NCBI RefSeq assembly: GCF_001194135.2
Contig: NC_068992.1
Span: forward strand, 1,299,963 to 1,363,962
DNA from: Octopus bimaculoides
Lineage: Eukaryota
DNA length: 64,000 nt
Direction of reading: 5' to 3'
Part shown: positions 41,023 to 43,657 of the stretch, piece by piece
Layout: every line of letters starts with the position of its first letter
How positions within the stretch are numbered: the stretch's first letter is position 1
Notes under the pieces: generated by a model
Told to the model about the DNA's origin: nothing
The model's input: only the letters and a program-made list of their open reading frames with translations
Database searches by the model: none
Position numbers and translations under genes: made by a program

Positions 41023-41741
41023 AACAAAAGTAGTCGTTAACTGAGATAGGTTACTTATAAAGTTATTTGGGCATCATTAACGTTTTACAATACAGTACGC
41101 ATCTATACAATTATTTGTATTTAAGTAGCCTCTTCATAAACCTAGCACAACTGTTCTAGCACATAGAAATAGTACTAATTATTCTCTTTCTGAATATCTA
41201 AATTCTTTCACTATGTTCAGATATAAACTTGATACAAATTAATACCATGCAGTGCGTAAAACGTTTAAACAACTTTAATAAATGTATTCTACAATATTTA
41301 ATGCGTAAGGAAAAATGTCAAAAATTGTGTTGAAAGCATTTCGCTATAAATATTTATACTTCTCATAACCGATAACAATTTCTCTTCAGTTAATGACGTT
41401 CGTACGGCCCGATTGGTGACATTTAAAAAGATAATGGCTTTTGATTTGTTGATAGGTATCATTACTGGACAGAATCAATAGATATCAAAATAGTTTGTTC
41501 CTAAAATATCACACAAAAAAGAAAGAAATATTATACGTCAAAGAGATATATTCATATACAGGCAGGATTTCGTCTGATACAAACCCTTTCACTAAAATTT
41601 TATTCCAATAACATTTACTAAATATTAGTAGAAGGAGAATTAATATAAATAATTGCTCCTTCTTCAATCGTTCCTGGGTATTAAAATCCTAAAAAGAAAG
41701 CGTTAGTTTTCCGTAAATTTTCATGTGTAACCAATTTATTT

Positions 41742-41943
41742 CCATATATAAGAGATGAGAAATTATGTACATTATTTACATTATTTACATTTGACGGATA
41801 TTTGTCTTCATCTTGTTTGTTGTTAACACTACGTTTCGGCTGATATAACCTCCAGCCATCGACTAGTGTCTTGGGGAAATTTCGAACCTGGGTTCTCATT
41901 CCTAAGGTATTTTTCGATGTTATCCTCATCATCATCATCATCA

Positions 41944-42000
<57 letters not shown>

Positions 42001-42060
42001 TCACTGCTTGAACTCGAACTCGGAATCGTGGTGTTAGCATGCCACTACACCATATACCCA
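41742..42060 (-). mobile_element. tRNA-headed SINE with hammerhead-derived 3' domain, left copy
   Basis: Reverse complement: A-box tggtgtagtgg, B-box gagttcgagttc, (TAA/TGA)n linker, body nearly identical to 42190-42341, tail aatgtaaataatgtaaataatgtacataatt. Confidence 0.9.
41825..41870 (-). ncRNA. Minimal type I hammerhead motif, catalytic core mutated
   Basis: gacac-TAGTCGA(for CTGATGA)-t-ggctg...cagcc-GAAAC-GTA-gtgtt. Stems I and II and the GUA triplet are intact; the CUGAUGA core is degenerate. Confidence 0.6.
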
Positions 42061-42068
42061 CGGCCATA

Positions 42069-42116
42069 TGGCGTAGTGGTTAAGAGCGCGGGCTACTAAG
42101 ATTCCGAGTTCGATTC
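42069..42116 (+). promoter_or_regulatory. RNA Pol III type 2 internal promoter (A box 42069-42079, B box 42108-42116)
   Basis: TGGCGTAGTGG fits TRGCNNAGYGG; GTTCGATTC fits GTTCRANNC. Confidence 0.75.
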
Positions 42117-42135
42117 CAAGCAGTGACCTGAAATG

Positions 42136-42167
<32 letters not shown>

Positions 42168-42239
42168 GATGATGATGATGATGATAATAACATCGAAAAA
42201 TACCTTATGAATGAGAACCCAGGTTCGAAATTTCCCCAA

Positions 42240-42285
42240 GACAACTGATGAAGGCTGGAGAGTATATCGGCCGAAACGTTGTGTT
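42240..42285 (+). ncRNA. Minimal type I hammerhead ribozyme motif (Penelope-type, palindromic stem III)
   Basis: gacaa-CTGATGA(42245-51)-a-ggctg/cggcc stem II-GAAAC(42273-77)-GTT-gtgtt. The core is intact, stem III is the loopless palindrome AACGTT, and stem I has one mismatch next to the core. Confidence 0.7.
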
Positions 42286-43657
42286 AACAACAAACAAGAT
42301 GAGGACAAATATCCGTCAAATGTAAATAATGTAAATAATGTACCAATTTATTTTATTGAAACGAATTTCTGGAAAGACGTAAAACATCGAGATGTTTTTT
42401 GCCTTCATTAATATTGAAGCACATGTATTGTGATAATTATTAATTCTTGTAAAATATTCATATTCGACGTTGTACGTTTAAGGAAAGCTTTTGTAAAATG
42501 CTTTATTTTGTGGTACGCATATATGTAAGTAATACTCATCGATTAGAAGTGTATGATATATGACAAGCAAATATTTCCTCAGAACAATAGAGTTAACGTT
42601 GTAACAATGAAATAGTTCTCGCTCTGCCTAAGGCTTAGCGCTGTAATTAAAATAATGTCAAGAAATTAAACAATAGCTAAACTAGGCACAGGCGTGTTTC
42701 TGAAATTCACTCCAAAATCAAGTGTCTGCAAATATAACTTCGAGCTAAGCACTTATTTGTTCAAAAGTTCGGTAGACGGAGCCACTAGAATGTGTCTGTA
42801 TGAGCGTATTGTGTGTGGGTGTGCTCTGATTCGACGGAATATAAAGTAGGCACATTTCTCCCACAAACTTTTAGTGAATATTCACAACGTTTAATCAACA
42901 ATAACTCGCAACTAGAAAATTTATGGGCCAAACATCAAGCTAAAAATATTTTTTGACTTTAGAGGGATGTACGTAAACGCACACAAAAATGCGTATCCCT
43001 TACTGACGAACATTCATTTGTTACTACGTATTAGTATTTTTTGTAGAGTTAGATGTACGACTGCTAGTGGTGGGTTGTGAACTCCATGTAGCATATCACC
43101 TTCTATAAGGCTTTTAGTATAGTGGGTGGTTTCTAGTGAGCTTATCAGTATTATTGGTTATGATACACAGAGGAAATGGAGAGCAAATTGGGTAAACAAA
43201 AGATTATATAATGTGTTCATTGCTCTAGTGTCACCTTTGTCGCTATTGCCTTGCATTTGATAGTCTCAGTGCAATTTAATCTCTAACCATGGATTTTGAT
43301 ACCTGGGGCAATTCATTACTGGAATATAATACAATGAAGTAATTTCCTGATGATCTGTTTTCGTTCAGCTGCCAATTGCACTTAGGAAACGCATTGCGGA
43401 GTTAGAAAGCGAAAGAGAGAGAAGTAAATGTATACAAGTACACTGAATCGTGACGCGATTGTGGATACCTGTGCCCTTGCCTTCGCCGACGTCTATTTTG
43501 CAGGCGTGCAAGGATGACCTGCAAATATAATGTATTATTTACTATATGTAAGCTTAAAAGATATAGTTCCTGGGAGAGAAATTTCGAAAAATTGTTTGGG
43601 AAACGAATAAATTACGTTTCCGTCGATTGAAGGACCACATTTATGAAACACACACAC

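Follow-up and report, generated by a model that had tools for sequence, protein, structure and literature searches.

Two inverted SINE-like copies within a single 12 bp target-site duplication in Octopus bimaculoides: a probable product of PLE-type integration

How do two copies of a short non-coding element come to lie head to head, in opposite orientations, inside one target-site duplication (TSD)? The question is posed by a locus of some 0.6 kb in a 64 kb window of the O. bimaculoides genome, the window being the whole stretch of DNA that was analysed. In the initial annotation the locus was described as a dimer of two tRNA-SINEs, fused at their 5' ends and presumed to derive from two different RNAs inserted together. 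The parts of the locus, with positions in the window, are as follows.

41730–41741, no strand assigned: left copy of the 12 nt TSD, ACCAATTTATTT, an exact direct repeat, sequence confirmed
41742–41766, minus strand: 3' extension ('tail') of 25 nt, left arm only, sense ATAATTTCTCATCTCTTATATATGG, absent from the right arm
41767–41923, minus strand: left-arm body with a (AATGTAAAT)2.6 repeat at 41767–41791, 92.4% identical to the right body
41830–41866, minus strand: degenerate hammerhead region of the left body, core CTAGTCGATG in place of CTGATGA
41924–41994, minus strand: left-arm microsatellite linker, (TAA)~16(TGA)7 in sense orientation
41995–42060, minus strand: left-arm head, 66 nt, A-box TGGTGTAGTGG and B-box-like AGTTCGAGTTC (42052–42010)
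42061–42132, plus strand: right-arm head, 72 nt, A-box TGGCGTAGTGG and B-box AGTTCGATTCC (42069–42117)
42063–42072, plus strand: perfect 10 nt palindrome GCCATATGGC at the start of the right head
42133–42186, plus strand: right-arm microsatellite linker, ATGA(TAA)7 TGA TAA (TGA)8 TAA
42187–42343, plus strand: right-arm body with its 3' end at GTAC, the final AC overlapping the TSD as a 2 nt microhomology at the junction
42245–42280, plus strand: minimal type-I hammerhead motif, CTGATGA-A-GGCTGG(AGAGTATA)TCGGCC-GAAA-CG-T-T
42342–42353, no strand assigned: right copy of the 12 nt TSD, ACCAATTTATTT, an exact direct repeat

The left copy (41742–42060, minus strand) and the right copy (42061–42343, plus strand) are inverted and their heads abut. 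In the inverted-repeat comparison the body arms (41767–41978 and 42132–42343; 212 nt) are 92% complementary and the head arms (41995–42032 and 42095–42132) 89%. The symmetry axis falls at 42060/42061, and from it the first 19 nt of both heads align without a gap, with 15 of the 19 positions identical. The innermost pairs around the axis are complementary in two of five cases, which places it with a precision of about ±5 nt. The head-to-head structure, its axis and the exact repeat are therefore as annotated, whereas the claim that the two heads are fused with no spacer holds only to that precision.

The repeat ACCAATTTATTT cannot be extended by even one base to either side and, being in direct orientation around inverted arms, it is not part of the arms. 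When a 600 nt segment was placed at random 200 000 times in the 64 kb window, a direct repeat of at least 12 nt was encountered within ±3 nt of both ends with a frequency of 2.1e-4, mostly in microsatellites. The heads lie too close together to accommodate TSD copies left by two separate insertions. The exact 12 nt TSD thus brackets the whole unit and, with no space for internal TSDs, supports the entry of the inverted pair in one event, as had been proposed. The target is AT-rich, with 12 bp duplicated; given a single event, it would have read ...CATGTGTAACCAATTTATTTTATTGAAACG... before the insertion, with one 12-mer.

The TSD directly adjoins each outer end of the pair, yet the left arm outreaches the right by 25 nt (41742–41766). 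Since both ends are abutted in this way, the asymmetry dates from integration, and the earlier view that the pair is not a symmetric fold-back is borne out. The extension translates as VHNFSSLIY and has a counterpart, VHNSSSLKY, in an independent O. bimaculoides copy, A0A0L8FV75; it is therefore family sequence and not flank.

What kind of element was duplicated? Using the A/B-box consensus as quoted in PMC8969392, the right arm has a pair of boxes at proper spacing (TGGCGTAGTGG..N26..AGTTCGATTCC) and the left arm a near-match. These two arms hold the only such pairs in the window and none was present in 100 simulated sequences. ARAGORN reported 0 tRNA genes and Rfam no tRNA, either at the gathering threshold (whole window) or at E ≤ 10 (locus). 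The label of tRNA-SINE agrees with the boxes but not with the tRNA searches; A-box and B-box motifs are the only basis on which it might be applied, and we write of SINE-like copies.

Residues 42245–42280 of the right arm display all the features listed for the minimal hammerheads (min-HHRs) of PLEs (PMC4209133), namely the core boxes, a bulged nucleotide after A9, the G10.1–C11.1 pair, a helix II of 6 bp, the palindromic 15.2/16.2 pair and the lack of a loop 3. A descriptor that we built from the features in PMC4209133, written after the sequence had been seen, matched once in the window, against 0.005 matches expected per simulated window. An intact motif is confined to the right arm, the core being mutated in the left arm and the motif partly decayed in A0A0L8FV75. 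The Rfam models Hammerhead_1, 3, II, HH9 and HH10 gave no match on 41600–42500 even at E ≤ 10 and none window-wide at the gathering threshold, as is to be expected given that min-HHRs are without helix III and a closed helix I (PMC4209133). A canonical helix III hairpin, GUUG-UGUUAA-CAAC, was considered and rejected, as it offers neither an A15.1–U16.1 nor a 15.2–16.2 pair and has no GUH site; the minimal reading GAAA-CG-U-U fits where the canonical helix III does not. The annotated hammerhead is accordingly kept for the right arm, in the form described for PLEs, but not for the left.

The arms differ from one another in their head deletions, linkers and 3' end points, as the initial annotation stated. 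The heads are 84% identical, with ten substitutions in 63 nt and two indels of 9 and 3 nt, and the bodies 92.4% identical, with the differences concentrated at the ribozyme core; the linkers are unequal, (TAA)16(TGA)7 on the left against (TAA)7..(TGA)8 on the right. Overall there are 22 substitutions in 220 aligned nt, a JC distance of ~0.11 or ~0.05 per arm. Octopus SINE waves lie at JC 0.065–0.09 from consensus (PMC13282606). The arm divergence fits within this range of SINE ages, as decay alone predicts. The present difference of 8–16% between the arms would be mostly decay after insertion through CpG loss, small indels and microsatellite slippage. Within the head, however, one 25 nt stretch holds more differences than would be expected if decay were uniform.

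A single copy from outside the window, O. bimaculoides A0A0L8FV75 (P0001), was available for comparison; it is known as a translated ORF and was the one match when proteins were searched with the body translated in its sense frame. With this one copy as outgroup, each arm is closest to the other and has private changes of its own. The two arms have in common the three-unit AATGTAAAT repeat, an E codon and a linker of (TAA)n(TGA)n design. An antisense-frame protein search for the heads of other copies, or for a subfamily with the left type of head, gave no match. Within the 64 kb window, blastn (word size 9) and nhmmer, run with heads and bodies separately, returned only the two arms and microsatellites, with no further family copies and no sequence similar to the body elsewhere; an inverted-repeat search of the window produced no other head-to-head pair, its remaining output being artefacts of N runs, palindromes rich in TA and one TIR element that is unrelated. 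In the viral contigs scanned, a 20-mer common to the two arms had 0 matches; its one metagenome match, to a GC-rich bacterial contig, was dismissed as chance. The element sequence was not found when searched literally in the literature.

Our analysis favours one PLE-type retrotransposition of a non-autonomous SINE-like element, which probably placed two inverted and essentially full-length copies in one staggered break, with ordinary decay thereafter. The assignment to PLEs is favoured by the min-HHR motif, which occurs only here in the window and has the extra features listed for PLE hammerheads, together with the 10 nt palindrome that opens the right head, the TSD structure and the one-sided family extension. 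A head-to-head inverted copy with one TSD and a one-sided extension is a documented signature of PLE insertion (PMC8557442, PMC3846280, PMC8969392). PLE units with inverted pLTRs are flanked by TSDs of 8–10 bp, head-to-head being the commonest arrangement; their pLTRs have been described as palindromic at the 5' ends, their targets as preferentially simple and AT-rich, and mobilisation in trans has been reported too (PMC3846280). The RT/GIY-YIG machinery yields such products from PLEs and from the sequences that it mobilises in trans. Octopus genomes contain abundant and recently active Penelope families as well as SINEs (PMC13282606). The inverted terminal structures of PLEs were half acknowledged in the initial annotation, although the signature is already textbook for these elements; on the best reading, the insertion pattern would match that already described for PLEs and would not represent a new mechanism.

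The element consists of a head with Pol III A and B boxes, followed by an internal microsatellite and then by a body in which the minimal hammerhead of PLE type is located. After a staggered cut, the free 3'-OH of either flank would prime cDNA synthesis on SINE RNA. For the left arm priming would occur at the true 3' end, with the tail kept; for the right arm it would occur about 25 nt upstream, at GUAC, via the 2 nt microhomology. Synthesis of both cDNAs would continue to the 5' terminus of the Pol III transcript, which is short, and a template jump or repair would then connect them end to end. The PLE partner and the priming from both nicks are what we infer from the structure, and the RNA would be either one molecule copied twice or two molecules.

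The window contains no autonomous PLE or LINE partner, a comparison of 150 open frames (62 aa or longer) with Pfam having revealed no RT or GIY-YIG frame. The sole Pfam match among these frames is a mariner transposase remnant. Because the window holds neither a PLE nor body-like sequence, the partnership of SINE and PLE is not backed by shared 3' sequence, and the 9 nt tandem repeats near the 3' end would suit a LINE partner too.

How close is the resemblance to known systems? In PLEs with endonuclease (Penelope/Poseidon, Neptune and Naiad; Pen2a_Av of Adineta vaga), as in the octopus pair, an inverted copy stands head to head against a direct copy and one short TSD surrounds the whole unit, of 8–10 bp in A. 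vaga and 12 bp here. The palindrome at the 5' end, the AT-rich target and the position of the hammerhead in the repeated terminal part are alike as well, and the extension at one outer end may correspond to the optional tail of PLEs. The octopus unit is, in contrast, ~300 nt of non-coding sequence with Pol III boxes rather than pLTR-ORF-pLTR, and is without a direct (tandem) pLTR; both of its arms appear full length, whereas in PLEs one arm is 5'-truncated. At the one locus seen in this family, the extension of 25 nt (27 nt counting the AC microhomology) is slightly shorter than the 30–40 bp quoted for PLE tails. The likeness is one of architecture and motif.

Sm-alpha of Schistosoma and the metazoan non-LTR retrozymes are also short, non-coding and dispersed, with type-I hammerheads whose helix III is weak or missing, which implies that they act as dimers, and their mobilisation by PLEs has been proposed (PMC4209133, PMC8969392). 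They occur, however, mainly as monomers or as head-to-tail tandems yielding circRNAs, an inverted head-to-head pair in one TSD is not described for them in the literature examined, and their hammerheads are canonical with loop–loop contacts whereas the octopus motif is the minimal PLE variant. Sm-alpha carries Pol III A and B boxes. L1 twin priming, which generates 5'-inverted L1 and Alu copies, resembles the proposed event in that both 3'-OH ends of a staggered break prime, opposite segments lie in one TSD and internal priming involves microhomology. In twin priming different parts of one RNA are copied, so that the product is inverted but scarcely or not at all duplicated and has poly(A) at one end only, whereas the octopus element is present whole twice, with both 3' ends outward and no poly(A).

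The initial annotation inferred that the arms came from two different SINE RNAs, perhaps paired via hammerhead helix III, with reverse transcription of one from each nick and head-to-head union of the cDNAs; in full, this model draws the RNAs from different source genes. The geometry fits, the unequal 3' ends indicate two priming positions, the dense differences in the heads could represent different subfamilies, and tumours provide documented cases of two independent L1 cDNAs joined at their 5' ends (bioRxiv 10.1101/2024.08.27.596794). None of the arm differences is, however, demonstrably older than the insertion. Private substitutions, indels and microsatellite lengths are expected from initially identical arms, decay alone predicts the overall divergence (JC ~0.11), and the arms, sharing the AATGTAAAT repeat, the E codon and the linker design, are mutually closest against the sole outgroup; moreover, one RNA copied twice would give the same product. 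We therefore consider two different source RNAs unlikely, and the grounds given for this part of the annotation do not support it. PLE min-HHRs are thought to work as dimers (PMC4209133), but pairing of the RNAs through the palindromic ACGU of the hammerhead amounts to 4 bp with a gain on dimerisation predicted by cofolding of only -4 kcal/mol, and is speculation. That a PLE complex handles SINE RNA as a dimer via an intermolecular helix III, copying both molecules from the two nicks of one cut, seems to us quite improbable; if true, head-to-head pairs would be hetero-dimers of different source genes, and both the dimer-only hammerheads and the inverted insertions of PLEs would be accounted for. 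A single primed nick would also suffice if the 3' end of the cDNA turned back to copy itself, stopped 25 nt short and joined the other target end through the AC microhomology, in which case the arms were identical at time zero and their divergence requires no difference in source. For those inverted repeats of PLEs whose junctions are palindromic, self-priming has been suggested as the origin (PMC3846280), and here the right head opens with the 10 nt palindrome GCCATATGGC, the two arms are in register about the axis and it is the shorter arm that ends in 2 nt of microhomology with the TSD. Snap-back through a terminal palindrome nevertheless predicts one central palindrome or a single-copy loop, and what is seen is two complete heads, each with an ATAT core. 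In addition, PLEs generally lose sequence from the inner (5') end of the inverted copy and keep its outer 3' end (PMC8557442), which fits two primings better, and we regard self-copying as unlikely. Annealing of cDNA ends through the head palindrome was rejected as the origin of the junction since it would leave one central palindrome and two are present.

A head-to-head dimer that already existed could itself have been the transposed unit, as one hairpin-prone RNA primed at the full left 3' end, the cDNA losing 25 nt at its 5' end and being joined through microhomology. This would explain one complete 3' end, one truncated end with the AC microhomology, the single TSD and any arm differences that predate insertion. 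We nonetheless think it very unlikely: both Pol III promoters face away from the axis, so that neither would read through the whole pair, a 602 nt hairpin of -391 kcal/mol is a poor template for RT, and a second copy of the pair was not found in the window or by protein searches. We attach equally little credence to origins of another sort, namely a foldback or MITE DNA transposon, two independent SINE insertions side by side whose 12-mer is coincidental, or an error of assembly. Long inverted arms and a TSD are superficially like those of foldback elements, but the outer ends are unequal by 25 nt, with inverted homology stopping at 41767 on the left and 42343 on the right in place of symmetric TIRs, and the arms have outward-reading Pol III boxes and a ribozyme motif. 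A TSD of 12 bp is also atypical for DNA transposons. Two adjacent insertions would call for a 12-mer with a chance frequency of about 2e-4 and should have left copies of their TSDs where the heads meet. The window is draft scaffold sequence, interrupted by ten N runs, and PLE-type structures are known to trouble short-read assemblies (PMC8557442); against an artefact, the pair lies within one ungapped 5 kb contig (39570–44576), and arms that differ by ~10% are not a chimeric duplicate of one read.

How PLEs make tandem and inverted insertions is still called undefined (PMC8557442). If PLE-type integration is the correct reading, a 300 nt Pol III passenger provides a compact natural reporter, since it preserves a complete integration product, in which full-length arms, a single TSD, a tail at one end and a junction with microhomology can all be seen. 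A single decayed locus is on its own an example and not a principle; should octopus genomes hold many such pairs, subfamily-diagnostic sites in young arms would tell one template from two. Near-perfect hairpins of 0.6 kb (-391 kcal/mol) are potential sources of dsRNA in a lineage with heavy A-to-I editing, and they are a hazard for short-read assembly as well.

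A long inverted repeat occupies 41730–42353. Alignment of the reverse complement of 41742–42060 with 42061–42343 reveals one element present twice, both copies reading from the centre outward in the order head, linker, body.

Components of the inverted pair (left arm on the minus strand, right arm on the plus strand)
41767–41978 and 42132–42343: body arms of the inverted repeat, 212 nt, 92% complementary
41995–42032 and 42095–42132: head arms of the inverted repeat, 89% complementary
Head: 66 nt in one copy, 72 nt in the other
Linker: an (ATN)n microsatellite, in each copy
Body: about 157 nt, with 2.6 copies of AATGTAAAT at its end

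Over their initial 19 nt the heads form an ungapped alignment with 15 identities, which places the symmetry axis at 42060/42061. The initial annotation reported no spacer here; the axis is where it was placed, but the statement is accurate to about ±5 nt since just two of the five innermost pairs are complementary. A single ungapped contig (39570–44576) contains the whole pair. Ten N runs (at 1091, 18416, 19380, 22527, 33460, 39300, 44577, 51404, 55624 and 59900; 3,824 N in total) indicate that the window derives from a gapped draft scaffold. Several apparent long open reading frames and a 160-nt apparent inverted repeat at 44510–44829 were rejected as N-run artefacts.

The pair is flanked by an exact 12-nt direct repeat, ACCAATTTATTT, at 41730–41741 and 42342–42353, both copies lying where they had been annotated. 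This 12-mer is direct around inverted arms and so does not belong to them. When a 600-nt segment was placed at random 200,000 times in this window, direct repeats of 12 nt or longer lay within ±3 nt of its two ends at a frequency of 2.1e-4, chiefly owing to microsatellites. The head-to-head pair is real and far above chance. Separate insertions would need a target-site duplication (TSD) each, and the space between the heads is too small for TSD copies; that the inverted pair, with its single TSD around both arms, is the product of a single event, as initially proposed, is therefore well supported.

A Pol III A-box/B-box pair (TGGCGTAGTGG..AGTTCGATTCC; consensus from PMC8969392) is present in the right head, with a near-match in the left. 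The window contains no further pair of this type, and 100 simulated sequences yielded none. The promoter boxes fit the earlier designation 'tRNA-SINE', but neither ARAGORN nor Rfam recognizes a tRNA and the label 'tRNA-derived' is thus unproven. The right arm reads CUGAUGA-A-GGCUGG..UCGGCC-GAAA-CG-U-U at 42245–42280, with both catalytic boxes, a bulged nucleotide following A9, a 6-bp helix II closed by a G10.1-C11.1 pair and a palindromic 15.2/16.2 pair with loop 3 absent. The same features appear in the description that Cervera and de la Peña give of minimal hammerheads in Penelope-like elements (PLEs; PMC4209133). A descriptor built from those features has a single match in the window, where 0.005 would be expected, but it was built after the sequence had been seen and is a weaker test. 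The hammerhead motif claimed for the pair fits this description in the right arm only; the left core is destroyed (CTAGTCGATG) and Rfam finds no hammerhead even at E ≤ 10. Differences between the arms concentrate at this core (41858–41866, ACACTAGTCGATGG, against 42242–42251, ACAACTGATGAAGG; six changes in 9 nt), with one difference in the adjacent 57 nt and none in the final 40 shared nt. The cluster may stem from a complex mutation or from constraint that varies along the arms.

The 64-kb window holds no other copy of the family. A protein-space search with the sense-frame body translation gave one match, a 51-residue 'uncharacterized protein' of Octopus bimaculoides (A0A0L8FV75), which is evidently another copy and points to an octopus or a near relative as the source of the window. 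Other searches for copies, covering metagenome and viral contigs and the antisense frame, recovered none. The protein copy retains the CUGAUGA box (PDD = CCT GAT GAT). Past ...SNVNNV it reads VHNSSSLKY, matched by VHNFSSLIY in the left arm, so the 25 nt at 41742–41766 belong to the family sequence. The 3' end is therefore complete in the left arm; the right arm is 25 nt shorter, ending at GTAC, and shares its final two bases with the TSD as a 2-nt microhomology.

Since the TSD directly adjoins both unequal ends, the asymmetry dates from integration, which argues against simple symmetric duplication and bears out the earlier view that the pair is no simple fold-back. Three variants lead to the identical static product. 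Two primings, on one RNA or on two, would use one terminal position on the template and one internal position with microhomology, and would fit the unequal ends. Snap-back, in which the first cDNA is copied onto itself, draws on the self-priming proposed by Arkhipova et al. (PMC3846280); if it went through the head palindrome, only one palindrome should remain at the centre, but both heads are complete. A dimer that already existed could have been retrotransposed as a unit with 5' truncation, but this requires a transcript beyond the reach of either outward-facing promoter, and the template would be a 602-nt hairpin (−391 kcal/mol). In Adineta vaga, whole PLE units with inverted pLTRs lie inside 8–10 bp TSDs in AT-rich targets, most commonly head-to-head and with palindromic pLTR 5' ends, and foreign sequence is mobilized in trans (PMC3846280); curation guides repeat the description of the insertions (PMC8969392). 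The octopus pair shares with PLE insertions its head-to-head arrangement, single 12-bp AT-rich TSD, minimal hammerhead and the 10-nt perfect palindrome, GCCATATGGC, that opens the right head (42063–42072; the left counterpart, GGTATATGGT, is non-palindromic); its 25-nt extension on one side may correspond to the one-sided tails of PLEs, quoted at 30–40 bp. The economical reading is PLE-type integration of a SINE-like passenger. Non-autonomous hammerhead-bearing elements have already been proposed to ride on PLEs, and octopus genomes hold many active Penelope and SINE families (PMC13282606). The pair is thus an instance of the established PLE insertion architecture, with a short Pol III-type element as the passenger; we found no description of this combination in the accessible literature, and it is not surprising. 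No reverse transcriptase or GIY-YIG frame was recognized among the window's 150 open frames of at least 62 aa compared with Pfam.

From the arm differences, the initial annotation put forward the hypothesis that two different RNAs were co-inserted. The arms differ by 22 substitutions in 220 aligned nucleotides (Jukes–Cantor about 0.11, or about 0.05 per arm), at least four of them CpG transitions. Octopus SINE waves lie 0.065–0.09 from consensus (PMC13282606), and this divergence equals that expected for two initially identical copies. Microsatellite length differences are uninformative, and against the single outgroup copy the arms are mutually nearest relatives, each with private changes only. 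Complex mutations, or differences between subfamilies, may account for the crowding of changes in a 25-nt stretch of the head and in the ribozyme core. Delivery of two RNAs paired through the palindromic hammerhead stem III was also suggested, as a speculative possibility; the predicted pairing through ACGU is weak (cofold gain −4 kcal/mol).

If transcribed through, 41742–42343 is predicted to form a near-perfect 0.6-kb hairpin (MFE −391 kcal/mol), a potential dsRNA substrate for cephalopod editing or small-RNA pathways. Long TA-rich microsatellite-like palindromes at 11666–11848 and 37058–37283 appear as zero-spacer inverted repeats and were rejected as elements, being of low complexity. Two further features were noted.

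Other mobile-element features in the window
51865–52818, minus strand: two adjoining open frames, Mos1-type HTH_48 (E 4e-15) and mariner Transposase_1 DDE domain (E 7e-23)
About 54841–55572: unrelated element, about 730 bp long, bounded by terminal inverted repeats (about 110–130 nt)

The former, which gave the only Pfam matches among those frames of the window, is a decayed mariner-like DNA transposon interrupted by the N run at 51404–51833. The latter has arms at 54889–54998 and 55414–55523 (76% complementary), with similarity reaching gttaaagcatg... / ...catgttttaaa, and resembles a MITE or some other kind of non-autonomous DNA transposon.
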